From Eutreptiella sp. 'Long Island Sound 2002' (Eukaryota; Protista; Euglenida): DNA of 64,000 nt. The notes below the pieces were generated by a model that was not told the DNA's origin, did not search any database, and worked only from the letters and a program-made list of their open reading frames with translations. The DNA lies in assembly GCA_964036045.1 (NCBI GenBank), contig OZ038378.1, forward strand, positions 93,930,001-93,994,000, in the 5' to 3' direction. Position numbers and translations under genes: made by a program. Below are positions 3,786 through 39,100 of this stretch, piece by piece (position 1 is the first letter of the stretch; each line of letters starts with the position of its first letter).

Positions 3786-4761
3786 CCTGGGGGTGCAAAG
3801 TTACCTCGGAAATCATAACTTAATCACGGGCCCAAAATGCCATTTTGGCGAAACAGTCTCTCAGGAGTGTGCACAGAAAACCAATTTGAAAAATGTTTGA
3901 CAGAAGCCATTCCACGGTACTGATAGCAATTTATTCTGGCGCTGGCAGTAGGACACGGGAGGATCAAGGCACTATGTCCAATTGTGTCGAAGGGGTGTTC
4001 CTGGCGGTGTTTCAAGGTGGCGCGGGGGTTGGATCAGGGTTATGTGCATACACACGGGTTTATCTCCTACCGAACAACGTCACACACATGTCCTGTGCGT
4101 ATTACGGTAGGGAATATTGCCCTCTAGGCAGGTGAAAAAGGAGGTGCTCATTGGCGCTCTCTGTTTCTTCCCATCCATAGGGCTCGTACCAAAGAGTCCA
4201 CCTAGTTGTGCATTACCTGGGGCGCATCTTTTGGTTTCCAGTGTTGCAATTAGTACCACACCAAGCTTCCCATTTTTGCTATGTCCTTTTACTCCCAGCA
4301 GTAGAACTACTATAGTGCAATACATGGTACTCAATACATGTCGTATGTACCGAAAACTATGGGCTATGCCCCTAGTGTACCCCGTATTACTCGGGTATAT
4401 GCCCTTTTAGTGGGGGACCCCGGGGGGGGGGGCGGCCGGGCCCGGTCCTTGTATGCGACCCCCCCCCCCGGGTTTTGAGAGATAGTGGGCTGGGGACATG
4501 GCGCCAACGGCGCCCCCTTTTTTCCGCATGGCGCCAACGGCGCCCCCCCTTTTTAGTGTGAGCGCCAGATTTCGCAAGACGAGGCGCTATACAAATGTCG
4601 TTTGTTGCGAGGTGCTTTGAGCGCGGATTGGCAAGACGGGGCGCTATACAAATAGTTTGTTGCCACCTGAAGATCCTGCACTCGGAGCAAAACCCCGGCC
4701 CGAGTGTAGCGCCAATTTCTTTCTGGGGCCAACACATTCGTTCAATCTTTCTTTCTCCTTC

Positions 4762-5240
4762 CCACGCTTTGTGGCGTGGCCCCTCGAGTTGGGGTTAGGG
4801 ACTCACAATCCACGCTTTGTTGCGTGGCCCCTCGAGTTGGGGTTAGGGACTCACAATCCACGCTTTGTTGTGTGGCCCCTCAAGTTGGGGTTAGGGACTC
4901 ACAATCCATGCTTTGTTGCGTGGCCCCTCGAGTTGGGGTTAGGGACTCACAATCCACGCTTCGTTCCGTGGCCCTTTGAGTTGGGGTTAGGGACTCACAA
5001 TCCACGCTTCGGTGTGGTCCCTCGAGTTGGGGTTAGGGACTCACAATCCACGCTTTTTTGCGTGGCCCCTCGAGTTGGGGTTAGGGACTCACAATCCACG
5101 CTTCGGTGTGTCCCTCGAGTTGGGGTTAGGGACTCACAATCCACGCTTTTTAGCGTGGCCCCTCGAGTTGGGGTTAGGGACTCACAATCCACGCTTTGTT
5201 GCGTGGCCCCTCGAGTTGGGGTTAGGGACTCACAATCCAT
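4762..5240. repeat. Tandem array, 46-48 bp unit x10, each unit containing GGGTTAGGG
   Basis: Unit CACGCTTTGTTGCGTGGCCCCTCGAGTTGGGGTTAGGGACTCACAATC; ten copies of GTTAGGGACTCACAATCC counted. Confidence 0.97.
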
Positions 5241-5570
5241 GCGACGTTTTTCCGCGTTTTTCCTCGCCAAAGTGCTCCATGGGGCGGTTCCCCTTGCAAA
5301 ATTTTTCAAAGGCCAGTATGGTGCCCAAACCCAAACTTGTGAGTGCCGAAACCTAAACCACAACCCAAGCAGTCGCCGCAGAGCGATGGGAGTAGGCACC
5401 CAGGAAAGTATTCGCTGTAGAGCGACGGTAGTAGGCACCATGCTGGTCTGCGCAACGATGAATAGCGTATTAATAGTACGTTGCTTTTCGTCGTTTGCGT
5501 GTCCCTTTGCAACAGTGTGCCCTGTGTTTGTTCCTTGCTTTGCTCCCTTTGTACAGTGCAGCGACACATC

Positions 5571-7634
5571 ATGGCGACTCTCAATCTTGAGAAGTCGCTA
5601 AAGCGAGGGAGTTGTGTTGTGTGCAACAAGAAGGGCTGCCACAAGGCATGTGTTACATGCCTTGTAGCCTACCACAACCACTGTGGACACGCTTGCCCCT
5701 CTGCAGCCCCCTCTTCACAACAGCCACCAGCACCTTCTCCAGACCCGCCGACCCCCCCTGCTCAACCTGAAGTCGGCCCTGTCCCACCTGCGGAGAATGA
5801 CCCACCTCTTGCCCCAGACTCTGCTTCCCATGCTGCCTGTGGTGGAAAATGTGGCCAGAAGGATGCCTCTTCTGGTCAATGCGGATGCACAGAGGAGATT
5901 TGTGGCTCTGGGTACCGTTTCAAGGGTCGGGTTTCAGGGGGTGAGAGGTTACAACATTTCACTTCGGTGAAGCACGAGGCATGGGTACATGCTCCTCCAC
6001 CCCAACCATCTATTTTTGGTAGCATTGAACGGTTTGTGGTAAAAGGGGTGGCACCCGACATTCCATCCGATGCTCAGCCGGAAGTTCCCGCCTCAGAGGA
6101 TGCGATCCTTCTGCCCCCTCCTCCTGATAGGCACCCCACTCCATGTGGTGGTTACATGCCGGAAGGTCACACACAACAGTCGGTGATACTCAACTTGCCT
6201 TTTTTTTTTTGGATGCACAACAATTGGCCGAAGGTACAATACCTTCGATCCCGCATGCTTGGCAGTTAGAACTTTGTGGTGTGCTCGACGAAGTTGAGAT
6301 TTTTCAACGTGAATTTCCCAGTGAGCCCTTTTTCATCTGCCATCGAGGCAACGACCGCCTAGAAGGCACGTTCTCTGTGTGTAGAATGGGTCGGGGTTCC
6401 GGCGCTTGCCCGGATATTGTTCAACTGCAGTACCGGTTGGCAATTGTAGTACAGAAGTCTGCCATTTATGCCAAACACCCGGAATGGAAGGTCATCCGAA
6501 AACGAGCTACCACGGGTGACAACATCACACCTGCAACAGCCGGTAGCTGCGCAGATGGCATTGATTGTGTAGCAGTGTGGAATGCCGGGTTGGATATGGC
6601 AAGTGCGGAACTACAAAGAGAGTTGCGTGCAATGGCTGTTGGAGGGGTCGGCATCTTCAGCCCATTCGGTGTTCCGATGGAAGTCGGCACAGTGGATGAT
6701 GCCGAGGAGATTCTCGATGACCCCGATGATCTCCCTCAGTGTGATGAGGAGGATCAGTTGGAGCAGACGTTCACTAATGACTCCATGATTTTCTTTGAGG
6801 GAAAACTGACTTCCAAACAGCAGGTTTTGAATGAACTCATTAACACACCCGCGGGCGCTGCTCCGCGGGACCGTCTCATGCGTGCTTTGCAGATGCCACG
6901 GCCAGGCAAGTTGCCCACATTGACCGTGACTCCCCAAGCGGAGAACATGCCTGTGGCGGTGACACATTTGCTGCTTGTGTGTGCTTCCACCAGGAGAAGC
7001 TCAAGTGGGGCATCTTTTCCCTTTGGGTTGTCAGTGATTCCTTAGGACACTCTGCCATGGACACACCCACATCTGAGATTGAGGGTGCGGCGCACTTGAC
7101 AGTCTATGGGCAGTTTATGCCCCTTGAGCGTTATGTCAGCGCAGGATTGCATCTTTGGCATGACCGTCTTCATGCACTCGCAACGTCGTTTCCCGGTACC
7201 TCTGTCTAGTTCATTCGTTTGCAGGTAAACGAGGATAGCAAATGGTATGCTCCAACTAGTCAGTTGGATGCCTTGTCAGAATTGTGTGCCCAATCCGCAC
7301 CTCAAAAGGTGCCTCCTCTTAAGTGTGAGCCTTATGAAGGCTTGTTTACTGCAGATCGTGGTGACAAAGGTTTCACCACTGACATTTCCCGCTCAGTGCA
7401 GTGCAAGATTTGCGAGGCAACAGTGCCACGCTTGTGCATGCTCACTCATGTGGATCAGCACCTTCTGCGGAAGGAGTGCGTCCAAGGTCAGGACGCCATT
7501 TCTTTGGCCACGGCTTGTGGGTTTTGTGACGACCGTGTCACTTGCTCCACGCAGGTCGTGATGCGGAACAAGCGGACACATGCCTTGGTCACCCTCATGG
7601 TCTCTGACTGTCCCAGTCGACCAGCTAAGACCCC
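5571..7634 (+). pseudogene. P-element/THAP9-related transposase-like gene with Cys/His zinc-binding modules (5' part, internally deleted)
   Basis: It has an N-terminal C-x2-C...C-x2-C...H-x2-C (PHD-like) module. GNDRLEGTFSVCR resembles the P-element QD-x-LE-x2-F-x3-R catalytic Glu region. It also has CKIC...HVDQHLL...CGFC. The reading continues in the inverted segment 10771->10244. Confidence 0.5.
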
Positions 7635-7878
7635 TGCGAGGGTTGTGATGATACGGGTGGGTCCAGGGCCACAAGCACACTGGCGTTTGATTTTGGGGAT
7701 ACAGATGACATGACAGTGGGGGCTTGGAGGAAATCAGGGTGCTCTGGGCAAGGATCAAATCGATAGAAAGTGGTGATTTGTTTCTGTCCGGACCAGTTAT
7801 TCTCAAATTTTAGCCTTCGCAAGGGGAAATCCAGGTTACCTAACCAAGAATTCTGCACAGAACAGCTGAAATCACATA

Positions 7879-9438
7879 TCATGGAAGTCTCAGCAAAATG
7901 TAACAGGCAAAATCATGAGAGTCGGGATCACACAGAAAAATGAATAGCACATCAGTGGTACAAGTGGCAGCACTGTAGCAATACCCCGTGGGAAACAGGC
8001 TCAAAACACACAAAACCCAAAAGGAAGCGAAATTTCGCGTCTCAAACCAAAATGTGCAAAAAACAATATTGAAAACAACAAATATCTCAAATGTGGCGAA
8101 ATTTCGCCACTCCAGCACTGCCAAGGCATTCTTCCCACTTCCCGGATCTCTACCAGCCCAATTGCAGTCTCTCACAAGGACACCAATGCTAAATGTAGGG
8201 GGGGGATACTCTTTCAACAACACCTTCAACCCCAAAAGTAGCTCCTTGCTTTTAGACTGCATGTCGTTCAATGGTCCATTCTGCGCCGCAACGGCAAATG
8301 CATCAAGTTTGGCCTGAACTCTTGGTAGAAAAGTGCCAGCATTAAGACACAGCGCCAGTATTGTCTTCTCCATATGGAGGAGCTTAACCTTTGTTGGTAC
8401 CGCACCCCCTTCCTTGAAATCGGTGTGTACTCTCTCAATCAGACAGATAATGGGCATAAAGTTGCGGTAAAGCATGGTGATCATATGCTTGTACGGGTGC
8501 CAAACCACGTAGATGAGGGGGAGGCTTGGCCAGTGCAACTGGAAGTCGCATGAAGTGTAACTCTGCCCATACAGGTATTTCAAGAGCTCATAGTGAATCT
8601 TCATATCCACACACAATGGTAAATCATGACGAGTTGCCTGCTGCACATGCCGGATTGTATGTATCAGTTTCAAGTGTTCCAGTTTGCTTCCACACCGTAG
8701 TTGAGACAGCATCATTGGTTGCCAACGGAGAGATACCACATTGTGCCGCACAATGTCGAGGGGGACTCTGACAAAGGTACGCTGAATCATGTCGGGAAGA
8801 GCATAAATCCGCCGAAACAGATCCGCATGACGAAGTTGTAAAGCATCAACACGTGCCCCAATTGTCCGAACGGCATCCAGTAGTGAGACATGACCCGGAA
8901 ATGGTGGTAGGGCTGGCAAATGTTACACGGTCACAGCTGTGCAATTTATGGAGTGGTCAGGATGCAGCAGGTCCACCCCATAATTCTTTTTCACCCAATT
9001 GTCATACCAGAGCCCCATCTGGTGGTTCTGCATGCTTTGCCAAAGCCAAGTTGCTTGTTCTCGTGCATTGGCAGTAAGTGAGGGCATAGCTGCATGCACA
9101 AGTCCTGTGGGAGCCAATAATCGGCGGGTCCTCCGGCTCAATGAAAGAGGCATTGGTACATCCTGGGACTGTGCATGAGGGGCTGCCATCTTTCTCAGAA
9201 GTCGCCGCAAGCATAGCAATTGATTGGAGAAAACAGTGTACCAACGGGGCTTCTTCCGTATTCCATGGGCAAACAGCAACCGTGTAAAGTCCTTCCGTGA
9301 ACGTCGATTTGTCCGCATTGCCAGGGCCCAGACGGCCAATAACCTTGCAGAGCCCCCGTCGGCAACATCCGTCATGAGGTCATCAACGTTCTGAAACTCA
9401 CGACTTGCCACAACCACCCTTAGGAGTGCCGGATCCAT
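7879..9438 (-). pseudogene. Element A DDE transposase (Academ/DUF6589-like), 3'-truncated
   Basis: Motifs WYDN, CVDMKIHY and IYVVWHPYKH are collinear with the ORFs at 18037-20166 and 26833-27537. There is one in-frame TAA at 8923-8925. Confidence 0.7.
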
Positions 9439-9593
9439 GTCCTGTGGTCACCTCAAAGCAAATACTCACATATTTGCCTCAGAACAGGGAACATACTGCA
9501 TGTCAAGATTGTCGGAATGTTCATAAAACTCATCAAAGGCACAAATTTCGGGACAAATGAAATCAATTTAGCACACAAATATACAAATACACA

Positions 9594-9613
9594 ATAAGGG
9601 TATCAATCCTAAG
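9594..9613 (-). mobile_element. Element A left TIR (inverted), flanked by the TTATC TSD
   Basis: The minus strand reads TTATC|CTTAGGATTGATACCCTTATTG. The right end at 14050 reads CAATTAAGGCCTCCTAAG|TTATC. Confidence 0.8.
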
Positions 9614-10243: not shown

Positions 10244-10771
10244 CTATGAGGACGAGGAGGAGGAGTCTCGGCGGGCGCCCTTCAAATGAAGCTGCCGTTG
10301 GGCTTCGCCCCGCCTCTTCTTGTTGCGCTTCCCGACGCTATTAAGCGGACGGGATCGCTCAGCCCCAGAGGTCGTTGCCTCTGACTCACTTGGGAGCGGG
10401 GGAGCAGGAGGCTTTGGCTGGGGCAAAGGCAGGGGAGGCAAGCTTGACGACGATGAAGCAACGTCGCCAGGTGCAGATGAGGCCGCTGCATCAAACTGAG
10501 CATCATCAGCCTGTGCGGGTGCATTGCCCTGATTTTTTTTCTTCCCCTTGTGAGGCACCCAATTCAGCACCGCCTCGTGCTCTGCCTCTGCAATGTCCAT
10601 CAAATCAGGGAGCCGTGCACTGTCATGCACATCTGCATAGTGCTGTGCCATGCAGTAAGACCAAACTTTCTTTGTGCATAGCGGACAGCGGACAGGATGA
10701 TTCGTGCACGGGCTGCTTGCAGATCTTTTTTGTCCTCTGAGGGCCCCGGTCAACGAAATCCGCACAGCCGG
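10244..10771 (-). pseudogene. C-terminal zinc-finger part of the P-like gene, displaced by the inversion
   Basis: PCTNHPVRCPLC..VWSYCMAQHYADVH joins in frame to the 7219-7634 segment when the inversion is reversed. Confidence 0.65.
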
Positions 10772-13358
10772 GGGAACAAGAAGGCCGCTGCGAAAACAGT
10801 CACTCTACCACATGCCGTCCAGAAGACAGTGGTGTTATCCCACAAGGTCCTGTGGGTGGATGTCAACCGCGAGCATGGGCCAATCCGGAAGGTCAGCGAG
10901 ACCAGACTAAAGCTGCCGTGGAGGATTTGGCAAGGGTACCTCCCGTGGGGATCATCAAGGGATTACTGGTCTGGCCTGACAATTGTATGTTACTGCATTG
11001 CTATTACACGTCTGTCGTTTGTGTACTGGCGTGGTGACCAATTTTTGTCTGTTATTGCCTCAGTGGGTAGCTTCTGGATCATTGGTGGTTAGCATGTTTT
11101 TTGTGCGGCGAGGAGACTGGCCAGTGAACGCGAGAAAAAGAATCTGGACCCTTTGAGATGGCCACTGGAGTTTGAGTGTATGGTTCTGAAGTGGGATACC
11201 CCCTTGCGCCAGAGGAGACGCCTAGCCGGCCACCAGCAAACAGCACAGCTATCAGGCACAGGAGCATGCATGAGTGAGAGGGCAGTGCTGCTGATTGAGA
11301 ACTTGGAGGAGCCTGAGAATGCTAATCTCAGTCTCACTGACGTGTGCCGCCAAATGTTGGAGGATGCTGGACTGACAGCTGATGAAGGAGGAAGCCCGGT
11401 GTGTGACTGTTGCTCTGATGCGCATTCCTGTCTTGAGCCTGAAAAAATTTGATGGTATGCCCTGTAGGATTCTCTGGCACGACGCTGGTTACCCTTGGCT
11501 AGAATGATGGACACAGCTGGCTACACAGCAATTGATGGAATACGCAATTTCGAGAACAGGAGCATCCCCTTGTCACTTGGATCATTCAAACCGTTGGAGG
11601 GGCTTATTGGACCATACCTTGCACAGTGTGCCAGATACATGGAGACTCCACGAGCTACTGTTGCACGCTTGGCTAAAGTGGCACGTGAATGTCAACGGGA
11701 AATGCGATGGGGCTAGATTGTTACGCATCCTGACTGTCTAGAGGAATTGGTTCACCCATCCCGCAGTATGTTGTGCAGGCATCCCGAATAGGACTATGAA
11801 ATCATCGAATTCAGCTGATAGTGGCGAAATTTCGCGTCTCAGGTGGAAACACGGTCTGGACACCCAGCTTTTCCCTACAACAGGAAATACATCCGACATT
11901 GCTACCCTACAGCGTCATATCAATGGGATTGGTGCATTGAAGTTCCGCTGTGCAGACTGGGTGTACACTCATGACATGCCTATGCCTCCCTGGGACTCTG
12001 TGTGCAAGGCCGAATTCTGGACATCCTCAAAATATGTAGACTTCAGGAGCCACCTCGCCAGACCTCGGAATTCCTTTGACCTTGCCAGCTCCGAAGGGAA
12101 TGTGGTTCACTTGCCAACAGTATTTGGTTCTGGTGCAGATGCTACTGGCGGTGAGTCCCCCTTTCAGCTTTGTCTTCTGAATCTTACTACCATTTTGAAT
12201 GCTACTGTCGTTGGGTTTCCGTTCATACTGGCTATCATTGAGGTTCCAAAGGGCTAGTCCATGGGTCTACCACCTCTTGTTGTGCGACATGTTTCAATGG
12301 GGAAACCACTGGTGGTTGCTGGTGAATTGGCGGATGTTCGAATCATCATAAGCCAGCTGCAGACTGACCTGGCTGAGGAGGGAGTGAATCAGGTGAGTGT
12401 CATGGTGTACAACACTGGCAGCCGCAGTCCCAATTTCACTATGATGCAATCAGTGATGACAATTGTCACGTTGACTCCAATTCCAAGGAAGGTACATTTC
12501 CCCCTGTGAATTGGTACCCCAAATCAGCCAAATTCGAAAAATGAAGCGAAATTTCGCCACTCCCGCCATTTTGCCCAATTTGCACCATCTGTTTAGCTGC
12601 CGATGTACGTTACGTTCAGTGAAGGCCCATTACCTAGTACCCTGTGTGCTGTGGCTGTTCAATGGGTGCTGCAGGTTCTGAAAGTCCCGATGAATCTTAC
12701 AAAACTGGGTGCTGGTGGGGTCTTCCTCTCCAAATTAGGCCGTTCAGCTTCGGTTGTATTTGGTTTCCTCAGAGTTGCGGATGATGAACTACCTAAAGAA
12801 ACTATTCAGCTCACAACTGGTACTTTAAGAGAGGCTGACTCTGTGGCGCCAATCTACGAGGAGTTTGTGTTGCCACAACTGGACAAGGGTGTGCCTATCG
12901 ACAGGACTGGAATGGCTTATGTACCTCATGACCTTGATGAGTAGGACCGCATGGATAGTAGGACGGACTTGGATGACAAGCCCAAGGGAAACCCAAAGCC
13001 GAAGGCATCTAAGCCAAGGCCCAAGAAGGGGGGAGCCAGCAATCCTTCCTATGTCGATGCAGGTGGCAGTGCCGAGCCCCAAGCAACGCCTACAAAAAGG
13101 GCTCGATCACCCTCTGTTGAGGCTCCAACGGCGCAAGATGATGAGCAGCAGACAGAGCAGACACAGCAGCAGAGTCAGCAATTGGTCACGCCGAACAAAG
13201 GCAATACACATCCACTGTTTGAGCCGAAAGGACAGTCACCGTCACCAGAGGGATTGGAGAACTTTGCGAATTTGGTGAGTGGTGGGACTGCACCAGGAGC
13301 CCAGCCACAACAGCAAGCTCAAAAAGGAACGTGTTTGGGGTACAAGCGACGATGGTGA
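10772..13358 (+). pseudogene. Element A cargo: ParB-like domain plus degenerate amino-MTase-like domain, spliced
   Basis: Segments EHGPIRKV, VEDLARVPP..LLVWPD, FWIIGG*HVFCAA, LKWDTPLRQRRRLAGHQQTAQ, LAIIEVPKG, FSEGP and LSKLGR align with the gene at 21189-24876. Putative introns end near 11843 and lie at about 12492-12597. Confidence 0.7.
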
Positions 13359-14050
13359 TTTGGTGTTGACTGCTATGATGAGACGATGGTGACTGCAGAA
13401 GGGCACCATCCTCTGAGCAGTCATCTTGAATTTTAATTCGTGTCCGACTTTATATGATTTGTTATTCTGACACGCCCTTTGTGGGTGTTGGCACATGGAA
13501 TTGCCTTTTGTAGGCAACATTTGGTAGTTTCTGTGATGCATGTTTGTGTATTGATTGCTTTTAAAGAGTTCCTTATGGTTCGAATCGTATTTCTGTGATA
13601 TTTTGTATCAATCTTGTACCGTGGCAAGCAGGCAATGCACTGACAGTATTTCATACCTCAACATACTGTATTTTGTATTTTACCAAATGTGGCGAAATTT
13701 CGCGTCTCATTGAGATTTCCTTAAAATGGGGGTGTTTTTCACCATACATCAGTGTACTGTTTCACAGTGTGTCATCTGTACACCACAGAACTCCTTCTGT
13801 GGACAATGCAATTTGTCCTTGAATGCTATTTCTTTGAATTTGCCTACCTGTTTTGCATGATTTGCAGTGTCCTCAATTGCAGGTAAAATGGTCCAATTGG
13901 ACGATATGAGGCATGATTTCAGCAAAAAATTTCATACGTTGTGCGCTGTGTGCAATTAGGGGGTAGTAATTCACCATTTTTTTCACCCCATGAATGGCCT
14001 TCATTTCGCAGACCCCCCCCACCCCCCCCGGGCAATTAAGGCCTCCTAAG
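10772..14050 (+). mobile_element. Element A right portion ending in TIR ...GGCCTCCTAAG
   Basis: The terminus is identical to that of element B (GGCCTCCTAAG at 26814-26824) and is followed by the TSD TTATC. Confidence 0.8.
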
Positions 14051-14649
14051 TTATCAATTTCTTCCCTAAAAAAAAACATTGTTTCGCGCCTCGTATGTCT
14101 CAAGTACAAGACTTCCCGGGTCATGGGCGACTCCCTAATTGGTATACAGCACCCCTCACGCACATTTCTTTGCATATCCCGCTGTTGTAGGCCTGCAGGA
14201 GAGTTTCCACAATGAGTCTACTGCTAGAAGTAGAACAGGTCACGGTGTCCATCAAGGCTCGCAACGTGGTGTTGCGCTCTACTGTTGCCCCATGGATTCT
14301 TACGTTGTGCAGCTTTATCCATTCATGTCATCACCCGATTGTTCCCTGTCTCCATTTTGCGTTGCACCACTTTGGTGTCATACCCCGGTGCGCTCAAGGA
14401 CACAGGCCTTGTCGATGTATGGTTCCCGTCTAATTGTACACATACTTGTCCTCTTGTGTTCTTATCAGCATACACCGAAGAATGTTGTCATGGGTACTTG
14501 TATGCCGTCCTCTGCATTAGCATCCTGTTTGGGAAATGTTGGGAAATACATCAATATCCACCCTGTTGGGGTATCGTCTACTGCTGGCAGTAGAATACAC
14601 GGCGATGGGCTGTGTCCTATCAATATGGCATATTACGGGTACATCTGTG

Positions 14650-17352: not shown

Positions 17353-18036
17353 GCGGTCAGTTAGCGCCCCGCTGCCCCTGTCTAATAATGCACTACCCCC
17401 AAGGAGTTCCCTCCTGCATCCCCCCCCGCGCACTTCTCTGTTGCCCACTGCCGCTTATGCGGACAACCGACATACCCCCAGGTACTCACTTTTGCCACAT
17501 GCGCATGTAGGATTGTCGCCGGATGTGGCTCCATCTGTCCCCCCACAACCATCTACTATCCCGGTAAAGAAGGATGGTCGGTATCGGTCACGGTGGTCAT
17601 TACTACGTGATATGCCCCCGGCCAAATACCGGAAAACTCTGTGATGCATTAAGTGGTTGGTCTACTCCCCAAATGGGTGGTATGCACCCCCAACTATCAT
17701 TTTTTGGGACCCTGGGCTGTGCAGAGCCCAGCTTGCGCCAAATGCTACTTTTACCCTTCTCAATTCTTTGCTTGTGGCACGTCCCTCCCTCTTTTTCCTC
17801 TGTCTATTACACGGCCCGCCATTACTGATTACGGGACGCTGGGCTCTGCAGAGCCCAGCACTCATAAACTTGGTACTTGAGGGGTGCTTATTGGGGTTTC
17901 TCTGTTGGCTGGGCTCTGCAGAGCCCAGACCTTCACCACTTCCTGTTTTGCCCCCTCTTGTGTGCTAGTCTACGCCTCTAGTTACCTGTTCTGGTCACCA
18001 CCTTTTCCTGTTGTCCACCCAGATTGTCTTATCACT

Positions 18037-26829: not shown

Positions 26830-28904
26830 GGCATGTATGGTGTATTTCAGTTGGCTACCAATTGTTCGGCACCAGTCTTACTGATGGTATGCGACATCAC
26901 CATGTACTACAGCTACTTGAAAGTGTTGTCTAGTTACTGGATGCAGCCACTTCCATTGCGCGATGTGTATGGCTCCGTTTTCCCCTTGTTCGGTATCTGG
27001 CATCCATATACGTTATGTGTTGATTACACGTACAATGCTTCCCTTCCATTCATGTTGGCACTTGAATTCGAAGGGTTCCCTCAAAACTCAGCGGCAAGAC
27101 AGCTGTATGCATATTCTTCCCTTATTGTTAAGGAGCGTCTTCTTTTGGCTATTCACCTGTCCATACCAAGTACACGTGCTCATTTACGTTCTACTGCTGG
27201 CAGCAAAACACTTGAACATAAGTTGTTAGCAAGGCTATACCATCTTGTCTTCCAATATGCCCTAGCCGTACTTTGTTTTGTTATTATGGTGTGCGATTGT
27301 TCGTGGTACCACCGTACACTAGGTACCATTGAAGTAGCTAGGCGGTGCTTGCAGGTTTCTCTTTACTTGCTTCGGAAATTGACCCCACAGCACAGAGATG
27401 GTGGTTACAAGCGAGCTTTGCACTTAGCACTACGAAAGTGGTCCCCATACCGCTCTTTCTTTCCCGCCTTTGCCTTCGTGCAGGAGAATGAGGCCCAAGC
27501 CACGCCAATCCGCCCCGATTCCTTTGATTTACAGTGAGACCTCTTTGATGCATGATACTTGAATGTTGAATATATTTCTTGCAACCCTTTAGTGGCATGC
27601 ACGGTTTGGGGTGTCCCACAGTAAGGGGGTGCATAGTAAGGTGTCCTAATGTGAACCTGCCTTACTATGGAGCACTTTTTGTGGGAGATGGTGTATCACT
27701 CCCTATACCCCCTCAATTCGGGTGTGACGAATGCGGTTTGACCCACGTGACATCGTATCAAAACCACAAAGGGGGCAAAAGTCGGGGAAAAACCATTATG
27801 ATCAAGCTGGTATATGACCCCCTTACTGTGGGACACCCCATAGGACTAGTCGGCCACACACAATGGGGTGGGGAGGTAGTCCTCACCTGCCATAGCCATA
27901 AGACAGTCCTGAGTTGCATTGGCCTACAAGAGGCTCGAAAGGCCGTCACACGGAGAAGTAGGTGCGAAATGTGAAACGACGCGAAACGACCACCTCACCC
28001 CCTGAGATGGTGATGCGAAACGCGAAAGGGTCGAAATAGCCTCACAGGCTTGGGCACCCTGTGGGGCACCCTCTTTGGTGCGGGCCATGCCAAAGAGGTT
28101 TCTGTACTATCAATGGGCCCCCTTGGAACGGCGAGGCCCTGTGGTCCCGTTTGGCAGGGGCATTGGGCGAGGACACCAGCATTACCAGCGTTGGTGACTG
28201 CCCATTGTTTTGGTTACCTTACGCCACCACCAGCCCGGTACTCGGAAGTTCGTACGAGTCGGTACGAGTTGTGAGCATGCATCTTACACCGTTGCTAGCA
28301 TGCATTCACGCCGGTACTGTGACAGTTGTAAAAAAGATGGCCGCTGGGCCGCGGCCGGGTGCCCAGGCTCCCGATACCCTGCAGGGTACTATGGAGTGGC
28401 TGAAGGACCCTGTTTTTCCACCTTGTTTCAAGACCCAACTGGCGGATGCAACCTTCCTATATGCTGCATACCGTTCGTTGGAGGTGTTTTTCTTTTAGTG
28501 AGATAATCCCGCCAAATTCAGCTTAGATTTGATGGATCTCACGAGGTGGCCGAGTTGCTGTGCACCCTGCGTTCCGCGAGTTCAAGCAGCGGTTCATTAA
28601 CTTCTGTGCCCATTTTGGGTATACACGCCCACACCCCTTCCCCGCTGACGGGGATGCTTTGGGGGATTACCCCCTCCTCCCCCCCCCGGACGCACCGGCA
28701 AGGGGAGCACTCCCTATCCCTCCCCAAGGTGTACCCGGGCCTATTGCGGCAGAGCCTGCACCACGGAACCCTGTGGGTCCTATTTTGGATGGTGATGATG
28801 CCACCAGCACTGATGCTTCATCATGTGATGCATCGAGCTTGACGTGTGCCATTGTGGAGAGTGAAATCTCGAACCTTGTTCGTAGTGTGACTGTTATTGA
28901 CTAG
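26830..28904 (+). pseudogene. Element C transposase, 3' part
   Basis: LLMVCDITMYYSYLK and FPLFGIWHPY are homologous to the A and B transposases. The more distal part is decayed and interrupted by a MITE. Confidence 0.65.
27607..27840. mobile_element. MITE-like element, ~22-bp TIRs
   Basis: TGGGGTGTCCCACAGTAAGGGG is inverted as CCCCTTACTGTGGGACACCCCA; no clear TSD. Confidence 0.7.
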
Positions 28905-31900
28905 CCCCATTGTTTCAGCCCCACTGTGCCAGCAGTACAAAACCACCACCGTGCTAAGTCCCCCCCATATCCAGTGCCGGTGTGCCCCGCTTTTGTGTGT
29001 TATGTGCATGGAGGTTGCCGAGTGTTTTACTGGCCACATTTCAAGGTACTTCACGTAACTGCAATGTACGCCAATGTCTGTCGCGTAGTGTGACGTCCCT
29101 TTCATACACACCCGTTCGGCTTGGAGGGATTATGTGTCTCGCAGAAAGTGATTGCTTGATGTTCTACTATCAGCAACAAAATGTGCTTCGAAGTCACAAG
29201 CAGGAAGAAGAGTTCCGGCTCTGAGCTGTAGGTTCCTGCCTTGGTTATGAGTCTTTTAAAACGTCCTTGAGCGAAACGCTGCAGGCCTGGTTTGCAGCAC
29301 AAGCCATAAAGACTATGACATTTCCATTCTTGGAAGCAGCGACAGGGGCCGCCGTCTGTGGATATAGGTGATGCATGGAAGCTTGAATCCTTGAATCGCC
29401 ACGGTCCACCCACGTCGGAAAGAGGCCAAGTGACTGAATGAAGGAATGTGCCAAAACATAGTATGTTCACTGCCAAATTTGCCTGTAACGTAGGCCCTTT
29501 TGGCCTTTTTTTTGGATTTTGGATTTCTCTTCGCATCTTTCCATGGGACCTTTTGTAGCTCGATTGTTTTTTACGATGGCAGTTGCTCGTAGGCGTGCGC
29601 AAGATACGGGACCGCTTGCAGAAGCACCCCCCCCCCCCCAGCGCCCCTAGAGACTGCCCCTGCCCCAGCCGTTCCGTTGCCTGATCCTGCCGCAGTCCTT
29701 TCCGAGGACGACGTTGAGGAAGTGCGCATCGGTGCACCGCCGGACCTTGGCCGTGGCACAGGACAAGACCCGGATGCGGAGCCAGCAAGCGATGACTATG
29801 AGGAGGACGAGGACGAGGATCATGGCGACGAGCAGGAGACATACCATGGAGGTGAAGAGACAGGGGGCGCAACGCAGCATTGGACAGACGAAGAGCACGA
29901 AGCGGCACTGACAGAGGTCCGCAAGTGGATTGCATGGCAGGGGTACATACCACTGAAGCAGCTCATGTGGTGTGGAACGCGATGCCGTGGATTGTCACGT
30001 CCGTTAAGCAGCAGAGACTGGACAAGATCCGGGCAAGCCTCCGACTCAAAAGCCTGGTCGCACAAGTTTAGACGTGCTTACTTGATGTGCACGGTATTTG
30101 CGGGTGCAATGGAGCTATGTCGTTTGCCTTTGACTACTGACGGTAGAAATCAATTCCGAATTGTGTGTTGCTAATGGGAGGTAGCCAGCAAGTGGCTGCT
30201 GCCAATTGTTTTGGAGAAAGTAAAAAGATGCGCCTTGTTTGTCCACAAACTCCACGTACTTCACCATTGTGGGTCAACACATTTTTGCCGTGGTGCGCGA
30301 GCTCTTCAACCAGAAGACGGCACCACTGGCAAAGGAGGGGGATTAGTTGGGTGAAGGAGACCGGCCAAAGGCCTACTCACAGACCCAGGCCGTCGTGATG
30401 AAACTTGAACCCTCCACGCCGTGTTGATCATGGTAGGAGGCCTCCACCAGCGCGCCCTGCGGAGTCATGAGGAGACCATCTTCAGCGAGATCCATGGAAG
30501 CCTAGCAGAAGTATGCCAGCAAAGAGGAGGGCAATGCCCGAAAAAGGTTACACTCAATGGAGATGAGATCTGGAGCATCATTCAAGATCGAAGTTCGGAG
30601 TACAAGGACTGTGAGACACCGGAGAAAATGGTAAGTTGTACTGCCAATTGTAGAAAGTTTCATGGCACCCTATGTGTTGTATGCACTCTGCAGCGATGTG
30701 AGCCTCGGTATTGAGCCGGAAATATGCATTTCCATGATTGTTGTCACAGCAAGGGCGGGCAGTGGCGGGGAGTCGCAAACTTTGTTGGCATGATGTATGG
30801 CTATCCCGATATGGTGCCGGCAATTGAAAAATTCGACGACTGAAGGGTCTTGGGTCCAGCACCGTTCAACGAGTGTGCCGCGGACATGCAGTAGTAGTAC
30901 GGCAAGGAGTTCATGACGTGCTTGACGGATCCGTTGACGAAAAAGGTCACGCTGAGCACGGTGAACCGTCAATGAAAGGAGTTGCGCCAAGAGTAGGGGA
31001 TCTACACGCATGTATACCACTCAGACTTGTTGATTCAAGACTTCCAACGTATGTCATGCACGGTCCGAGGGCAATCTGCTTTCTTGCACACCGTTTTTAC
31101 TGCTAGCAGTAGAACTCATTTCCGAACAATCTTTCCGACAGGTTCGATGCGACAGGCCTGGTGCATACAAACGCAGGTGCCTTTTACTGCTAGCAGTAGA
31201 ACACTGTGTCCAATTGGAACCGTGGTGTCTTATTTTCCTAGGCACTGAGAGCACAGTGAAACGTCTAATGGCTTGGAACGACCGGGTGTGGCGTTGGGGA
31301 CTGCGAGCACGAGCAGCAGCACTTTGGAGAGTGGAGCGATTGCAATTGAAGGCAAAGGATTAACTGAAGGCCAAGTTCTGGACCCAAGGAGCACAACACC
31401 AGTTGATGAAGCGTCTGATGGCAGACATGATTGCACAAGGTACTATGAGCACGGATGCCGCACATGATAGATTGGTCGAGGTGGTGGTGAACAACAAGAT
31501 GCGGGCACTGCGATATTGCAAGGACAAGATGGGAGCTGTGAGTGCTGCCCCCCTTGTATGCATTGAGTTTGATGGACACGATTCGTGTGGTGCTGGGTGG
31601 TAAGTTCGGGGCCGATGAGACCCCTTGCATTGTGTATGGACCAAATGCAAGGGAGGAGGCAGCATCCCTACATGAGAGGCACTTTCTACCGGGAAGGTGG
31701 TAGAAGACCGAGATGGCGGTGTACAGTACAGTGCAACCGGACATGGGTGCAAAGGCCAGTTGGACTAAGTTCACATGCAGTGTTCCGTATAGCGTGTTGC
31801 TCCAACCCAAGAATTTCATCCCGCGTCCTCCAGACATGGTTCTGAATTCCCCGGTGACCTAGATTAAAGTCAATATGGTTAATTTTAATTTTTAGTATAT

Positions 31901-32149
31901 GAACCAGTTAATACATTAATCTCGTAAATATTAAGAGGTTAGCGTTCCATCTTTTTGATTGGGTCATGAGTACCGATTTTTCCATGCACATTTGAGGACC
32001 CATAAGGGGTGTTACGTGGTATATTGTTGCACAACGGTATAGTAGAGAGGTTCCAATGTTGTGTTGGTGGGTGTCTTGGACACCCCCCCCTCCGGTTGCC
32101 CGCATTCCCCCCCACTCCACACCACCATGTTCCCTTGTATAGCTCTTGT

Positions 32150-33580
32150 TATCCCTTTCTTTCGGGACACCCGTACCGAGCGTAAGATGACGCTCGTGCG
32201 CTTGAGTGGGGCCAAGAGTTTGCGGGACCCTTTGGTCTCCCGACTCCTTGGTCAGTGGGTGGCTTCATCTCCCTTGGCCCGGGCCCGATGGTCCGAGGCC
32301 ACGGAGGTGGGCTACCCCTCCCTTATTGGCGACAAGCAAAAGGAGGCGGTGAAGCAATTGCCTGCCACCTCTTCCCGGCCCCGGACCTCATCGGCCTCCT
32401 CATGGACTTCAACGTCCCCAAGCTTGGCTTCCGGCACGTGTCGGAGTATATGAGGCGCCGGGGGTCGGCCTACGCGGCCGCAACGGGCCTCCCGTTCCCC
32501 CGCTCCATCCCCACTTGGGATACGTTCACTTACACGTGGATGGAGTTGGTCACCACCCTTGACCTACGGCCACCCGTGTCCATCCCGGATCCCCCGGCGA
32601 GTGTGCGCTCTTGGGCGCTACCCTCATGGGCTTGGTACGTCCAATCACGTCCATCGCTAGTGGACACTATCGATTGGACAAGGCTCCTCACCTTCATAGT
32701 GCGTGGGGATGCGTACCCGTGCGCCGGTGGTAGTTGGACCCAACTCTCCATTGGGCTCCTCAACCACGGCGCACGGGGCCACACACCCGCGTACTTGTGG
32801 GTGATAGGGATGGCCATGTGCGGGGATACGGACATGGCGGCACTAGCAACCATATGGGCCGACAACTTGAAGGTTTGTGGCCCATTCGTTGTTTGTTAAT
32901 TTTTGCGCTTTTTTGTGTTGATTTCTCAAGGTTAATTTCTAGATTTCGGTTAATATTAACGCCGATCAAAAAAGTAATTTAATATGAATCTCGAGAAATT
33001 AATGCAAATATTAATCCATTCCTTTTTTGTAGGTGTTGCAGTCCATACAAGACTGCAAGAAGTTCTACTGGGTGTCCCCCTCGGTGCCAAGCGGGTTGGT
33101 CATCGGGGGGAGACCAACCCTTCGTGCGGCTCCTCAATTTACAATATGGGGGTGTGGGACAAGGTTGCGGCGGCATGGGTCAACATGGTGACCCGGCGCA
33201 CCTTGGATCGTGAGGAGGCGGCCCGCCTCCGCTACAAGGAGACCGGCCGTAGCTTGGAGAATCGGGGATGCATAGGGGATCCACACATTGTGGTTGACCG
33301 GTGTGTGGTCTTCCTATGCATCCTCCATTGTTGCATGGCCATAGGCCGGCTCCAAGTGGCGTTCATCGAGACACGCCTCGTGGATCTCCCCAAGGAGAAC
33401 GTCAACGCCGTGCAACGGGTCCTCTACCGGCCCCGCACGGGTGTGAAGTCGGGTGCGTCGCCGTGACCCGACGGGGAGGAGGCCCGTGCGTTGTTCCTCG
33501 TGTGGGAGGAAACTGGTCCGTTGTTGGACTACGTCCCGGAGGATGGTGAATGGCAAGCCGTCATCACATGTACCACCGGT
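32150..33580 (+). pseudogene. CMC-type transposase with AT-rich GT-AG intron (32873-33032)
   Basis: Motifs are IVRGDA..SWTQLSIGLLN..LWVIGMAMCG, LCILHCCMAIG and PDGEEAR, which fit a CMC/RAG1-like D..H..E layout. One TGA lies at about 33464. Confidence 0.55.
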
Positions 33581-33589
33581 GCCCAGCAC

Positions 33590-33953
33590 AGAACATTGAA
33601 AGAGAGACCAATATTGTCCGGTTACCGGTGGCCCTTTTAGGAAATCTGTACCGACGTGCATGCGATATGCTTCGGTCCGTCGCTTGGAAGTTTTCGAAAA
33701 CCCTTGGAAAGATGCTCGGAAGTTTTGGCAGCCAGATCGGCCCCCCAAAACGCAACCGATATCGGTAGGAATGTTCCATGGGCTTCCCAGCCGACCGTGC
33801 CGGGGGAGCTCGGAAGAAATTTTGGCTGGGACTTCCGAGATCAACCCTGCAATATGAGTCCCATTTGCTGAGCATGAATGCTGAGCATCCCCAAATATCC
33901 TGAGCAATATGCTTAGCATTTTCCTGCCATTTTTTACCTTCTATGCTGTGCGT
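33590..33953. mobile_element. Possible ~360-bp insertion with 8-bp direct repeat CCCAGCAC
   Basis: CCCAGCAC occurs at 33582-33589 and 33954-33961, with weak terminal inverted similarity (GCACAG..ATWGAA.G). Confidence 0.35.
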
Positions 33954-34473: not shown

Positions 34474-35752
34474 CGGACAAGGGGAACGGGGACGGGGAGG
34501 AGGGGGAGGGAGTTGAGGTTTTTGACCCCCCCCCCTCCCCCCCCCACGCTCCCCCAGTGGCTCCTCAAAGCGGCGGGCCCCCAGACGGCCGCCGCTCGGA
34601 AGGCGGGGGCGATCAGCTGGTGAGACCAGGTGCTGGAGCCCAGATGTGCAGGGGATCAACCCGTTTTATCCCCCCACGCACATGGCCACATGACAATCAC
34701 GTGGCTTTTCCGGAGGTTAATCCGGTGTTTGATTCGGCGAAAGGAGGGGGAACATAGAGGCACCTCGGGTAAGTTTGCCTCCAAGGGGGGGTTTGGGTCT
34801 GGAAACCCCTCCCTGCTGCCCCCCTAGCCCCCATGCCCCAGGCCACCAGTGTGGGCAGTTTGCCCGGATCGAATTTGTTGTATGACCGCCGCGCCGTCCA
34901 TTTTGGGACGGCGCACTACCAGGTGGTGCTACAGCATTGGACCCAGCCGGGTCAAGCAGTGGCGGCAAGGCAAGGCCGTGGTGTTCGGGGTCGACTGGGG
35001 CAGTGCCCTCGCCCTGCCCCGACCCATTTATGATCTTGCCTCATCCCCGGCTCGTGCACGGCGAAGGCGGCCGCGGTATCCGCGAACGTGGCCAAGCCGG
35101 CGGCCCAATCGGCATCAGCGGCCAGCGCGAGAGCCCCCGAGGTGGCCCCCACCGCAGCGTCTCACTTCCGAGATGCCATGGGGGCAGTACAGGAAGCAAG
35201 CACCAACGCTACGTTTGAGGTATGGTGCTTGTTTGTTTTGCTTAATTTCTAGGCCGCCAGCATTAATTTCTCGAGATTAATTTTCAGTTTTTGAACCGCC
35301 GCTCGAAACATTGAAAGTTAAGGGTTAGTATGAAAGTCAAAAAATTAAAAAAGTCGCTGAATAAATTAATTCTCATTTCTGTTCTTTTTTTTATGTCTGT
35401 AGGTCATAGACGTCGTGGGCAACGCGACGCATGCTAGGCCCTTCCGGGTGGTCTGCGCGACGCTGAGGGATCCCAGGAAGTACCCCTGGGGTACCTCCAC
35501 CGCATCGTGGCCCAAGACCTGCCGTTGGGCCTTGCTCTCTTGCGCGGTCTGCATGACTGGGAGACCTCGGGTGTGCTTAGCGGCGTTTGGGTGACGTCGG
35601 GTCACTTTCAGCGATGAGTGGGCTCGGATGTAGCAGGTGGGGTATGCGGGGGGGGGGGGTGAGGGGTTGCGGGGGAGCATGGGAGGGGGTGGGGTGAGCG
35701 ACGAGGAGGAGGGGGGGGGGCAGGGGGGGGCGTCCACCACCACCGCGCCAAC

Positions 35753-36135
35753 CCCCCCCCCCTGAGCCAAGCCGCAACCCAACCCCCCCCGACCCCCCTC
35801 AAAAAAACGAAAGGAACAGTTCGCCTTCGAGTCCGACTCGGAGAGAGACGGCGATGCCCCGTAACAAAAAGCTCAAACCCCCCCCACCACCTCCCCCGCA
35901 CGGCCTACGGAGGCCGTCTCCGCCCCCAAACCCACCAACCCCCCCCCCCCCCCTGAGCCAAGCCGCAACCCAACCCCCCCCAACCCCCCTCAAAAAAACG
36001 AAAGGAACAGTTCGCCTTCGAGTCCGACTCGGAGAGAGACGGCGATGCCCCGTAACAAAAAGCTCAAACCCCCCCACCACCTCCCCCGCACGGCCTACGG
36101 AGGCCGTCTCCGCCCCCAAACCCACCAACCCCCCC
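35753..36135. repeat. Near-identical tandem duplication, ~192-bp unit x2
   Basis: CTGAGCCAAGCCGCAACCC...AACGAAAGGAACAGTTCGCCTTCGAGTCCGACTCGGAGAGAGACGGCGATGCCCCG...CCCACCAACC is repeated. Confidence 0.93.
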
Positions 36136-39100
36136 CCCCCCCCCGACCGCCACCGCCCCCCCCCCCCCGACCAACACCAACACCCCCAATGGTGCCGAGA
36201 AGAAGGACGACCGTCCCGAGGATCCGATCGTCGGGACGGTCATCCACGTACCCTACCCCACCGTGGTAGAGAGGGGCACCTTCCATGGTATCCACGGACG
36301 GAAGTATGGTGCTGTTTGGTTGGAATACCCAGGCGGCACCACCCTCTACGAGGCGGCCCGGCCCCTCCTCTTCCCCACCCCCGAGGAGGGCGAGCGGTCC
36401 GGGACGAGGCCCGGTCGGGCAAGAAAAAGCCCAAACCCCCCGCCTCCACAACCGAAGAGACTAACCCCCCGATCCCGAACCCTACCACCGAACCCACGAA
36501 CCCTACTAACTCCACTAACCCCCCATCCGGACCTGCGAAGATGTGGGACCCCACTAGGGGCTCCCATGCGGTATCAGGGCCCGCATGGGGACCCAATGGG
36601 CCACAATGGCCATGCACAACATTCATGAACACACACGTAATGCATTACGTGTCATGTTGTGCAATTGTTAGGAGGGTTAATATTTGGGGAATAGAGTTAA
36701 TATTTGTGAGATTAATATTAATGCTGGTGACTTTTTAATTTTTAACTTTTCAAATATGAATCCAAAAATCAAAAATGAAAATCAAAGCCGACAACCATTT
36801 GAACATTTTGAAACAACCAGATGGGTAGGACACCTGCACCAACCGCTGGGGGAAAATGACACCAAAGCCCGCAAGGCACCCCATGGGGGGTCATAATTTT
36901 CACGACAAACGCCTAACCCCCCTTCAAAAAATGCAAGCTTGACATTAACGTTTTAATTTTTGGCCGGATATTGACTATATTGGGTTTAATCTAGGTCACT
37001 AGGGTTACCTATGGCGCACCTCAATGTTCTGCTGGTGGTATGAACGTCTGGTCCCATCGATGAATGTGCAGCAGATCGAGCACAGGCCATGTTGTTGGTG
37101 TTTCTTGTGTCCTACGGCCCTGCACAACCAATTTTGCAGATACTGTCGACCCTTCTAGTGTACTTTGTGCGGTGGACCATCCGCTTCTGGTGTTGCACCG
37201 GCCTATCTCCGAAATGCATGCAAACGGTCGTGTCGAATGACGTGAGCATGGCGCAAAACGCACCGCCTCCAAATCTTGAAGGTGAGTTGTCGTTATTTGC
37301 CAGTGGGACCCCGATTACCCTGGCTGCGGTGAAGGCCGTGGTGAAGCGCTTCGTGGAGAGAACGAAACAGGGAAAGAAAATCGATACGCAAGTGATGAGG
37401 CAGGATGCCAAAGCACTCTGCCAGGGCAGCCAGTACACTACAGGTAGTCGGCAAGAGGACCACTACATCATCCCAGCTGTCACGTCTTATAGAGAGCCCT
37501 TTTCACCTGCTTGCCCCGGATGAGAACCCTCGGCATGACATGATAGGGCCAATTTCTGCTAGTACTCCAAAGAGTAAGGTGTCACAGCCCAAGGCCGGCC
37601 CCCCAGCCAAGCCGTGTGCCATCGCCTCTCAGTCTGCTCATGTTCCAAAGGCCACAACTGTAGGTGGAGAGGTTCAGCGAAATACCCGCGGAGTGAAGAG
37701 GCCAAGGCCCCCCGTTACTACGCAAGAGGAAGCACAGACAAGCCCGGCAACACGCTCGAGCAGTTCCACGTCTGGGACCACCAAGAACCCTACTCACAGG
37801 ACATGCTGAAGTTTTTCGAGAACAAGGGGGGTAAGAGGAAGAAGAGGTGATCACAGAGTCTTATGCATGCTGGTGTTCTCCTGTTGGCAATAAAGCCCCC
37901 CCCCCCCCCCAGTGGATAGTGGTTGCTGCCTGGCACGGCGATCCGTTTGTGCCTTGTGTGTGGGGCAAACAGCACTGCTTTGCACTTGGCCCTTGCTCCC
38001 TGTCACTGTGCAGCTGTGCTCTACTGCTGGTAGTAAAACAAAATTTGTTTGTGCTCGTCACTTCCGTTACCCGGTTTGCAGCACCCCCACATGCGGACTG
38101 CCCTTGATGTGCCCGAGCTGCCAGGCTTATTTCCGACGCTGCAACTTTCATGTTGTGGTCAATTCTACTACTCACAGTAGTACCCTCATGTTGCTATCCT
38201 TCAGCATCTGCATTCACTTATAAGCCACACATCGTGCCGCTTGCACCAGACAGCAGTCCTGCTTGCTGGTGGTATTGCATTGTCTGTTGGTGTGCACTTG
38301 CACTGTGATGCATTCCCTTTGTTACTCAAGTCACGGCGTCCATAGGTCTTTGGTGAAGAAAGGTCTCGTATCTGGTTTGTGTGGTGCGGGTTCTACTGCT
38401 TGCGCAAAATAGATAGGTGCCGTCTTATAACAAAGTGGTATCAAAGTTGCAGCTACATTCGCTTTTTATGAGGAGACACTGTTGTGCATGTCTGCCTTCC
38501 ACTTTTCTTTGCGACGTCAACATACCAAGTTATGTGTCTACGCCTTGCAACAACGCCTTTTCCGATTACCATTTCCCCACACATTCATGTTTTCCACCCT
38601 ATACAGGCGAGTTCTACTGTGGGCAGTAGAACGAGTTGGCGTCGGAGACGTGGTTTTAGCAGGGGTGCTGTGAAGCTTAAAATTGATTTTCGGGTCCGTG
38701 CACATTCTTGAGATTTTAATACGAAAAAGGGGGTGTCTACGGTGCCCCCAAACCACCGTTTAATAAGTTACCCCGGGCAGTGTATCTTCGCACCCCCAAG
38801 CGCCACACCCCCATAGGGTAGCACGGGACCACGCTGGGTTCATTTCAGACGCCTATACCCCCGCTTTATCCCTTCCTTCACCCTCATCTAGTGCCAAAGG
38901 ATAGTTGTACATCCTTTTCTGACACTTGCTTGTTTCTTTCACTATTGGCTACATGGTTGTCATATGTTGTTTCATATCGTTATCCTTGCATTTTAGCTTT
39001 TTTGTTTGTATTGTCAGCAACATTGTAGCATGTCTTTTGCATGTTTTGGTACTTACAGTTTCTTAGGTTTTGTGTTGGGTCTTTCTTTGTGTGTGGTAGG

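Follow-up and report, generated by a model that had tools for sequence, protein, structure and literature searches.

In the KorB-OB system of RK2, and likewise in the ParB-parS and Noc-NBS systems, many palindromes of 13-20 bp are spread across the replicon, some of them promoter-proximal and one beside the gene. Some eukaryotic transposons encode non-catalytic proteins that bind repeated motifs of their own element and on which end pairing, regulation or anti-silencing depends. Examples are TnpA of En/Spm (CACTA), whose motifs form inverted pairs, and, in PIF/Harbinger, the Myb-like second protein. Here we describe a 64,000-nucleotide stretch of DNA from Eutreptiella sp. 'Long Island Sound 2002' (contig OZ038378.1, positions 93,930,001 to 93,994,000; hereafter the window, with positions counted from its first letter), a region made up of a nest of related eukaryotic cut-and-paste DNA transposons, among them elements A, B and C. 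Every subfamily of this transposon family has its own perfect palindrome of 18-20 bp, placed intergenically and subterminally and typically in pairs ~69 bp apart. Its longer members (A, B and relatives elsewhere) also carry, as cargo, a gene for a ParB-like protein of ~300 amino acids (aa) between the transposase gene and a further gene, open reading frame (ORF) 3. Where it is present, we consider the ParB-like protein the most likely binder of the palindromes, a reading to which we give about an even chance.

The general arrangement of a transposon ParB-domain protein with an inverted-repeat array was already published in 2025. Petroll et al. 2025 (bioRxiv 10.1101/2025.02.11.637652 / Curr Biol) described giant Plavaka elements of red algae with the accessory genes PAG1-3; PAG3 is a transposon ParB-domain accessory protein with adjacent tandem inverted-repeat arrays, for which self-binding was proposed. 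The Ectocarpus element Sola1-1_Ec32 carries an accessory gene for a ParB-DNA methyltransferase (MTase), and green-algal ParB-MTase proteins are cited in the same work (PMC12477816). The statement in a preliminary description of the present DNA, that no eukaryotic transposon with this arrangement was known to have been described, is not supported in view of these two reports.

By its description, the PAG3 arrangement resembles element B, in which the ParB-like gene (21243-22445) lies inside a transposon bounded by inverted repeats at its termini (TIRs) and by duplications of the target site (TSDs) with an array (22468-23441) adjoining it, and in both cases other accessory genes of no assigned function travel alongside. 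PAG3, however, joins ParB to a 2-oxoglutarate (2OG)-dependent oxygenase, whereas the cargo here is ParB-like only. The carriers of PAG3 are Plavaka/EnSpm, Mutator and Zisupton elements, whereas the transposase here has no detectable Pfam relation and the elements have CTTAGG termini and a 5-bp TSD. The palindromes here, unlike the PAG3 arrays, occupy all intergenic regions in pairs ~69 bp apart, and occur also in a ParB-less relative. Sola1-1_Ec32 likewise has a ParB-like domain protein as the accessory gene of a eukaryotic transposon, with self-binding proposed, but that protein has 1104 aa and an MTase domain and is encoded on the opposite strand, whereas there is no MTase here. What sets the present family apart from the published ones is thus a stand-alone predicted ParB fold, an unclassified transposase family with a 5-bp TSD, a network of paired, subfamily-private palindromes, and a ParB-less relative that keeps the sites.

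Element B and the palindromes of its family

Members of the family have TIRs starting CTTAGG(A/C)GGCC and 5-bp target duplications, and their core genes are those for a presumed transposase of ~700 aa and for ORF3. Element B (15606-26824, + strand) is a complete TIR transposon of 11,219 bp. Its TIRs are 32 bp long with the consensus CTTAGGAGGCCCATAGTGCCCCCTATCGTTTT, and a 5-bp target duplication flanks four of four copies (ACTAG in the window, AGAAG in the related locus L001, ATCAG in L006 and TTTAT in L007), which makes B a genuine cut-and-paste transposon. In the window, the left duplication (15601-15605) is followed by a left TIR (15606-15637, +) with two substitutions relative to CTTAGGAGGCCCATAGTGCCCCCTATCGTTTT, and the right TIR (26793-26824, -) is followed by the second ACTAG (26825-26829). 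The copies in L001, L006 and L007 are 95-97% identical to window B; the L001 copy, on a multi-megabase ENA contig, aligns to window 15604-26825 at 95-96% identity.

All genes of element B are on the + strand. ORF1 (16609-17352; 247 aa, proline-rich) is uncertain as a gene, and no homolog of it was recognised. A putative DDE-type transposase (18052-20166) follows, with a stop at 18496-18498 within its conserved WVDNW motif. The ParB-like gene consists of exon 1 (21243-21582), encoding the first half of a predicted ParB/Srx N-domain, an 84-bp GT-AG intron (21583-21666) and exon 2 (21667-22445), encoding a GGQH motif, a RRKLAGQHNRAQH motif and a helical domain. This gene is conserved as far as about 22305, and one of the palindromes occupies 22404-22423. 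Directly downstream is a tandem array (22468-23441; 249 bp x 3.9) with one B palindrome pair per unit, the largest palindrome array of the element. ORF3 (23509-24873), a gene conserved in the family, encodes a tail that is first acidic and then lysine-rich and is broken by a single stop (24490-24492); it is intact in L006. Window B has a premature stop in the transposase and open ParB-like frames, whereas the pattern in L006 and L007 is the opposite. Protein clusters at ≥90% identity hold at least 83 transposase and at least 99 cargo sequences, and most of those listed come from assembly ERZ25074135.

The splicing of the cargo gene is backed by homologs. Exon 1 aligns with the N-termini of full-length relatives (BLASTP E 2e-7 to 8e-12) and ends exactly at ...LVW, and exon 2 resumes with ...GGQH.... 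The spliced gene, a neighbouring reverse-transcriptase element and multi-megabase contigs packed with transposon copies together point to a eukaryotic source. The proposal that these are eukaryotic DNA transposons is supported by the TIRs and target duplications of B and by the intron in its cargo gene.

The B-type palindrome (CTGGGCTCTGCAGAGCCCAG) occurs at 23 sites with ≤2 mismatches, all within 15712-26366. The A-type palindrome (GTGGCGAAATTTCGCCAC, 18 bp) has an exact copy at 8093-8110 and copies with 2 mismatches at 11821, 12543 and 13689. For the C type, the exact 20-mer that had been quoted is absent from the window. Its closest match, TTTTACTGCTAGCAGTAGAA, differs by 1 mismatch and occurs at 31095 and 31182, and sites with 2 mismatches lie at 14216 and 14576. 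In shuffled sequence, 0 matches were expected for each of the three types. The window contains 18 perfect palindromes of ≥16 bp, 13 of them B-type, where we estimate ~1 for random sequence (64000 x 4^-8). Throughout the window and ~130 kb of related loci, each palindrome type keeps to its own element, and in four copies of B all palindromes are inside the element and the flanks are empty. The palindromes are therefore real, far above chance and confined by type, as had been proposed.

B sites occupy every intergenic region of the element, upstream of ORF1, of the transposase, of the ParB-like gene and of ORF3, and also lie near both ends. Eight pairs of palindromes are 69-70 bp apart, leaving a spacer of 49-50 bp. 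Comparison of the eight pairs gives identities of 92-96% for the palindromes, against 33-41% for the spacers and 30-37% for the flanks. Because the palindromes are conserved and the spacer length is constant while the spacer sequence is near random, this pattern marks selection on both the sites and their spacing.

Each gene is bracketed by palindromes, which precede its start by ~90-200 bp and follow its stop by 3-100 bp. This placement would also suit nucleic-acid structures that act in cis, for example as promoter or terminator modules, as hairpins giving rise to small RNAs or as recombination hot spots around gene cassettes. The tandem amplification of palindrome-bearing units is in line with such a role, as is the coincidence of a deletion and inversion junction in element A with the palindrome at 8093-8110. 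A signal for the host machinery should not, however, vary among five subfamilies in one genome, and loopless dyad symmetry, a spacing of 49-50 bp and random spacers fit a dimeric protein better than RNA hairpins. We regard an explanation by cis-acting structure as improbable.

Further subfamilies have palindromes of their own. That of subfamily D (TTGGGCACTGCAGTGCCCAA, six sites) differs from the B palindrome at 4 of 20 positions. Subfamily E, represented by the P0095 cluster from many metagenomes, has CTGGGCGCGATCGCGCCCAG, with a pair 68 bp apart, and subfamily F, from L013, has TGGGCGAAATTTCGCCCA. In L011, AGACCCGAAATTTCGGGTCT occurs at no fewer than nine sites, the first of them 3 bp past the stop of the ParB-like gene, with pairs 68-69 bp apart. 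In L012, TTTCGCATATGCGAAA flanks the ParB-like gene on both sides, and in L014 an E-type core palindrome lies before the ParB-like gene and another at its end. Since several palindrome types (A, B, C, D and F) occur in one genome, a host factor is unlikely to be their reader, and an element-encoded, subfamily-specific protein would be needed.

The ParB-like protein and the transposase as candidate readers

An exhaustive phmmer search gave 66 relatives of the cargo; some of these, from other metagenomes, are complete at 277-333 aa. A metagenome scan with a narrow ParB alignment added one locus. One of the relatives, P0268, is tied to the B cargo at phmmer E 1.5e-8 and was placed first in a 27-sequence family alignment for AlphaFold2 (AF2) modelling. 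The model had a predicted local distance difference test (pLDDT) score of 88.6 and consisted of a ParB/Srx N-domain followed by six helices. Foldseek matched it best in the PDB to Noc (7ng0/7nfu), ParB (7bnk/6sdk/6t1f), KorB (8qa8/8qa9) and sulfiredoxin, the top 24 matches having probabilities of 0.97-1.0 and the lowest E value being 6e-5. Alignments ran over ~240 columns across constructs of the N-terminal and DNA-binding domains, with TM-scores of only 0.35-0.56. The predicted structure thus supports the cargo as a ParB-superfamily protein with the ParB/Noc/KorB fold, that is, a ParB/Srx N-domain plus a helical domain.

The likeness to KorB, ParB and Noc would extend from the predicted fold to the distributed palindromes, the site beside the gene and a specificity that differs between related systems. 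Unlike those systems, this one has a eukaryotic host, no ParA or KorA partner, no detectable sequence similarity at the level of hidden Markov models (HMMs), and GGQH in place of the arginines that bind cytidine triphosphate (CTP); a C-terminal dimerisation domain is not evident in the cargo. ParB box II, GERRxRA, is replaced throughout the family by G-G/S-Q-H-x-x-A, the arginines being absent in every one of the 20 or more aligned members. Because of this replacement, a CTP-driven sliding clamp is not expected in the cargo family.

The preliminary description had called the cargo 'ParB-like/MTase-like'. The first half of that label agrees with the AF2 and Foldseek results for the homolog, and for the second no such domain was found. 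An MTase identity of the cargo was rejected, as the full-length homologs of 277-333 aa are filled by the ParB N-domain and the helical domain. A ParB-MTase-type cargo, acting at parS-like sites to modify or partition the element in the manner of ParABS or phage ParB-MTase proteins, might be expected from the ParB fold and from the published algal transposon proteins that fuse ParB to an MTase or a 2OG-oxygenase. Yet the cargo has ~300 aa, no MTase or other enzymatic domain and no match in Pfam or NCBIfam, the GERRxRA arginines are lost, there is no ParA in the element, and ORF3 is without recognisable enzymatic homology. We therefore consider this possibility very improbable.

A palindrome lies within ~50 bp of the 3' end of the gene, or overlaps it, in A (11821), B (22404), L011, L012 and L014, so that one adjoins the gene in five of five independent ParB-bearing subfamilies, and the ParB-like genes of L011, L012 and L014 come from three other metagenomes. 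Classically, parS or sopC adjoins parB, and the layout here matches. We favour the ParB-like protein as binder because its fold family binds palindromes as dimers, because a site abuts the 3' end of its gene and because the largest array follows that gene.

Several observations weigh against this reading. The fold assignment rests on the predicted structure of a homolog 27% identical to the window protein. Searches of Pfam and NCBIfam with E up to 10 gave no match for the window ORFs or for P0023, P0058, P0268, P0277, P0278 and P0280, and a PDB sequence-profile search of the cargo family gave none either. The nucleotide-binding arginines of ParB are absent from the cargo family, and no ParA or other ATPase, nor any Pfam domain, was found in the ORFs of B or its relatives. 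Profile HMMs found no ParB-like gene in element D, although it is complete. Short contigs of subfamily E have palindromes around the transposase gene and no ParB on the same contig; an E-type ParB locus exists elsewhere (L014). In B, the first site and the last are in subterminal position, at 106 and 458 bp from the respective ends. Finally, pairwise identities between the ParB-like proteins of different subfamilies are uniformly 23-30%, a star-like pattern that does not speak for co-divergence of protein and site; because the identities are star-like, a ParB-palindrome co-phylogeny has no power here.

Some of these observations suit the transposase as reader. Transposase-binding repeats are usually subterminal, and the palindromes may be the transposase's own sites, bound through its helical N-terminal region like the subterminal repeats of hAT, CACTA, P and Mutator elements, with the ParB-like protein an optional accessory that has another role, for instance in chromatin or in a nucleotide-dependent activity, or that binds elsewhere. 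Palindromes occur in every transposase-bearing subfamily, the ParB-less D and the transposase-only E contigs included, and at both ends of the element they are subterminal. Palindrome type is matched to the transposase subfamily no less closely than to ParB, and in the model of the transposase the first 90 residues are helical (pLDDT ~60-87, mostly near 80). It would, however, be atypical for a transposase to have perfect 20-bp palindromes in fixed pairs, in all internal intergenic regions and amplified behind the ParB gene. The cleavage ends of A, B and D have CTTAGGAGGCC in common, and not the palindrome, and on the ParB-only contigs L011, L012 and L014 the palindromes hug the ParB-like gene. 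We take binding by the transposase to be possible, if on the unlikely side.

The intact transposase has 706 aa (P0206, P0210) and the conserved motifs WVDNW ... LLVDxNIH ... WHPYKH ... IEK, with acidic residues in WVDNW, LLVDxNIH and IEK. It is presumed to be a transposase because of its conservation, these acidic motifs and the TIR/TSD structure of the elements. No family match was obtained in Pfam, NCBIfam or PDB sequences, and the AF2 model was poor as a whole (pLDDT 42), with Foldseek returning noise only. For the CMCT clade (EnSpm/CACTA, Mirage, Chapaev, Transib and Plavaka), H(3)H and C(2)C motifs were described by Kojima (PMC12730594). In the present family H(3)H is found (WHPYKH) and the 5-bp TSD fits, but there is no conserved C(2)C and no Pfam match to Tnp2, Plavaka or KDZ, and the element termini are CTTAGG...CCTAAG, not CA..TG. 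ORF3, the third conserved gene, lies downstream of the cargo. It was detected in L011 (E 3e-10) and D (E 9e-10) as well as in B, and remnants of it are left in A; searches of Pfam, NCBIfam and PDB sequences gave no recognisable enzymatic homology for it.

Elements A, C and D and the surrounding repeats

The preliminary description had three elements, each with a transposase followed by a homologous cargo gene. This is correct for A and B, whereas C has transposase fragments only and no cargo. The A and B transposases are homologous at ~31% identity and their cargo genes at ~25%, and A, B and D have the terminal motif CTTAGGAGGCC in common while their internal palindromes are different.

Element A in the window is a decayed and rearranged copy. 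Compared with the canonical copy, and with its own cargo block, the left block (7629-9607, -) runs in the opposite direction, as seen from a reverse blastn match to L002:815-4180. It contains a transposase pseudogene (~7882-9447) with an in-frame stop, detected by tblastn and HMM. The right block (10732-14050, +) carries the palindromes at 11821, 12543 and 13689, a ParB-like pseudogene (~10733-11773) with a stop inside the GGQH motif, and ORF3 remnants (11742-12941). Its right terminal repeat ends ...GGCCTCCTAAG at 14050, where the motif CTTAGGAGGCC, as in B, is followed by TTAATTGCCCG. The canonical order is given by a second A copy (L002:494 to ~7460), with transposase, cargo and ORF3 in order on a single strand. 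The exact A palindrome at 8093-8110 coincides with the junction of a deletion of ~1.4 kb (window 8093-8112 vs L002:2340-3712), which suggests a palindrome-associated rearrangement. A unique segment between the two A blocks holds a 173-aa ORF (10244-10765, -) whose CPLC...H....H motif is C2H2-like.

Of element C only a remnant is left. In its left part (14216-15605, +), two palindromes (14216-14235 and 14576-14595) precede transposase fragments (14817-15602), and this part stops where B inserted. A distal transposase fragment (26830-27534, +), in which WHPYTL replaces WHPYKH, continues the frame that B interrupted; with B and one duplication removed, a single frame runs through ...RCPLDL... / ...FGIWHPYTL.... 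Since B sits inside the C transposase gene, C-type palindromes are found on both sides of B, two of them (TTTTACTGCTAGCAGTAGAA, 31095-31201) being 87 bp apart. Neither a cargo gene nor ORF3 was detected for C by tblastn and by profile HMMs on the six-frame translation, and inverted-repeat and terminal-motif searches did not find its outer boundaries. Other repeat families fill the region that had been given to C, as seen from matches of window 31851-32454 and 33566-33825 to unrelated parts of L001 (84% identity) and of L002 (72%).

Element D (L002:8678-12997) is complete at 4.3 kb, with the TSD ACTTT and both terminal repeats, and was inserted ~1.2 kb past the end of the A-type copy in L002. 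It codes for the transposase and ORF3 and has six palindromes, the outermost ~220 bp from each end. The N-terminal part of its ORF3 shares an ORF with the C-terminus of the transposase, and a palindrome at 10487 lies inside the transposase ORF, where it may mark an intron.

L013 holds a diverged B-like copy that is heavily fragmented and has lost its palindromes; this locus revealed subfamily F. The F transposase is at L013:19330-20113 (-), and the palindrome TGGGCGAAATTTCGCCCA at 20393 is accompanied by a degenerate copy 73 bp downstream (20466; region 20393-20481). The F site merges the A/L011 core (CGAAATTTCG) with the arms of B, D and E (TGGGC...GCCCA).

In L012, the called protein P0280 (L012:555-1388) apparently includes a translated intron, placed where the B gene has its own (...VWNNVGMKLF... 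vs ...VWDDKGMGLL...). The position of the intron may thus be conserved in a host of 40% GC.

The window contains other repeats as well. A satellite of ~3 kb (48320-51315) consists of 62/83-bp units. In every unit GGAATCATCGCGTG...CACGCGATGATTCC forms an inverted repeat, accompanied by the palindrome GAGGGGTGTA(G/C)ACCCCTC, which is a perfect 20-mer at 50271 and at 50435. The HMMs for ParB and for the transposase had no match nearby. Arrays of 10-bp units (TGTGCATCAG, TGGGGACCTA) with 79-117 copies each and strong GC skew lie at 47519-48312, 51316-52485 and 52846-53628. Tandem repeats are found at 4762-5239 (48 bp x 10), at 53706-53954 (21 bp x 12) and at 35752-36143 (191 bp x 2, 99% identical), the last overlapping the start of a proline-rich ORF (35854-36738). 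Homopolymer runs of 12-18 C or G are frequent throughout the window (e.g. 14012-14030, 15221-15241, 26100-26120 and 35938-35955), inside and outside the elements, and also in the related loci. An Rfam search gave no rRNA, tRNA or other family, and no relic of a dinoflagellate spliced leader was found.

A possible operator network and its meaning

In the explanation that we favour, the palindromes would be operator-like sites of a dimeric, element-encoded and subfamily-specific DNA-binding protein. The ParB-like protein may act on them as KorB does on the operators of RK2, or as TnpA of En/Spm does on its subterminal motifs, marking the element as 'self' and bridging the paired sites. Such marking and bridging could serve regulation of the element's genes, counter-silencing, or pairing of the ends for transposition. 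By analogy, TnpA and the Myb-like protein would be the closest functional counterparts of the cargo among eukaryotic transposons, but their folds are unrelated to that of the cargo, and their motifs are ~12 bp long and only subterminal. We only infer that cargo and palindrome form a cognate pair. The sites of element D would be read either by its transposase or ORF3, or by the ParB-like protein of B, which D would then borrow.

A more specific proposal is that these elements form an unclassified transposon superfamily with a KorB-style operator network, in which a stand-alone, CTP-independent ParB-fold protein works on subfamily-private palindrome pairs and the ParB-less D parasitises the protein of its relative B. 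We consider this proposal in its entirety unlikely, and offer it tentatively. If it is true, each subfamily would be a 'specificity group' of its own, so that A, B, C, D and F could coexist without cross-regulation.

The transposase, without a known family, merits formal classification, given its 5-bp TSD, CTTAGG termini and relatives in many metagenomes. If the ParB-like protein does bind the palindromes, a eukaryotic transposon would offer a compact bacterial-type DNA-binding module, made tractable by a protein of ~300 aa with no fused enzyme and by sharply defined sites. Such binding would open to testing the view, put forward in 2025, that transposons of algae recognise their own DNA and manage it, and would let one study how protein-site specificity diversifies among subfamilies in one nucleus.

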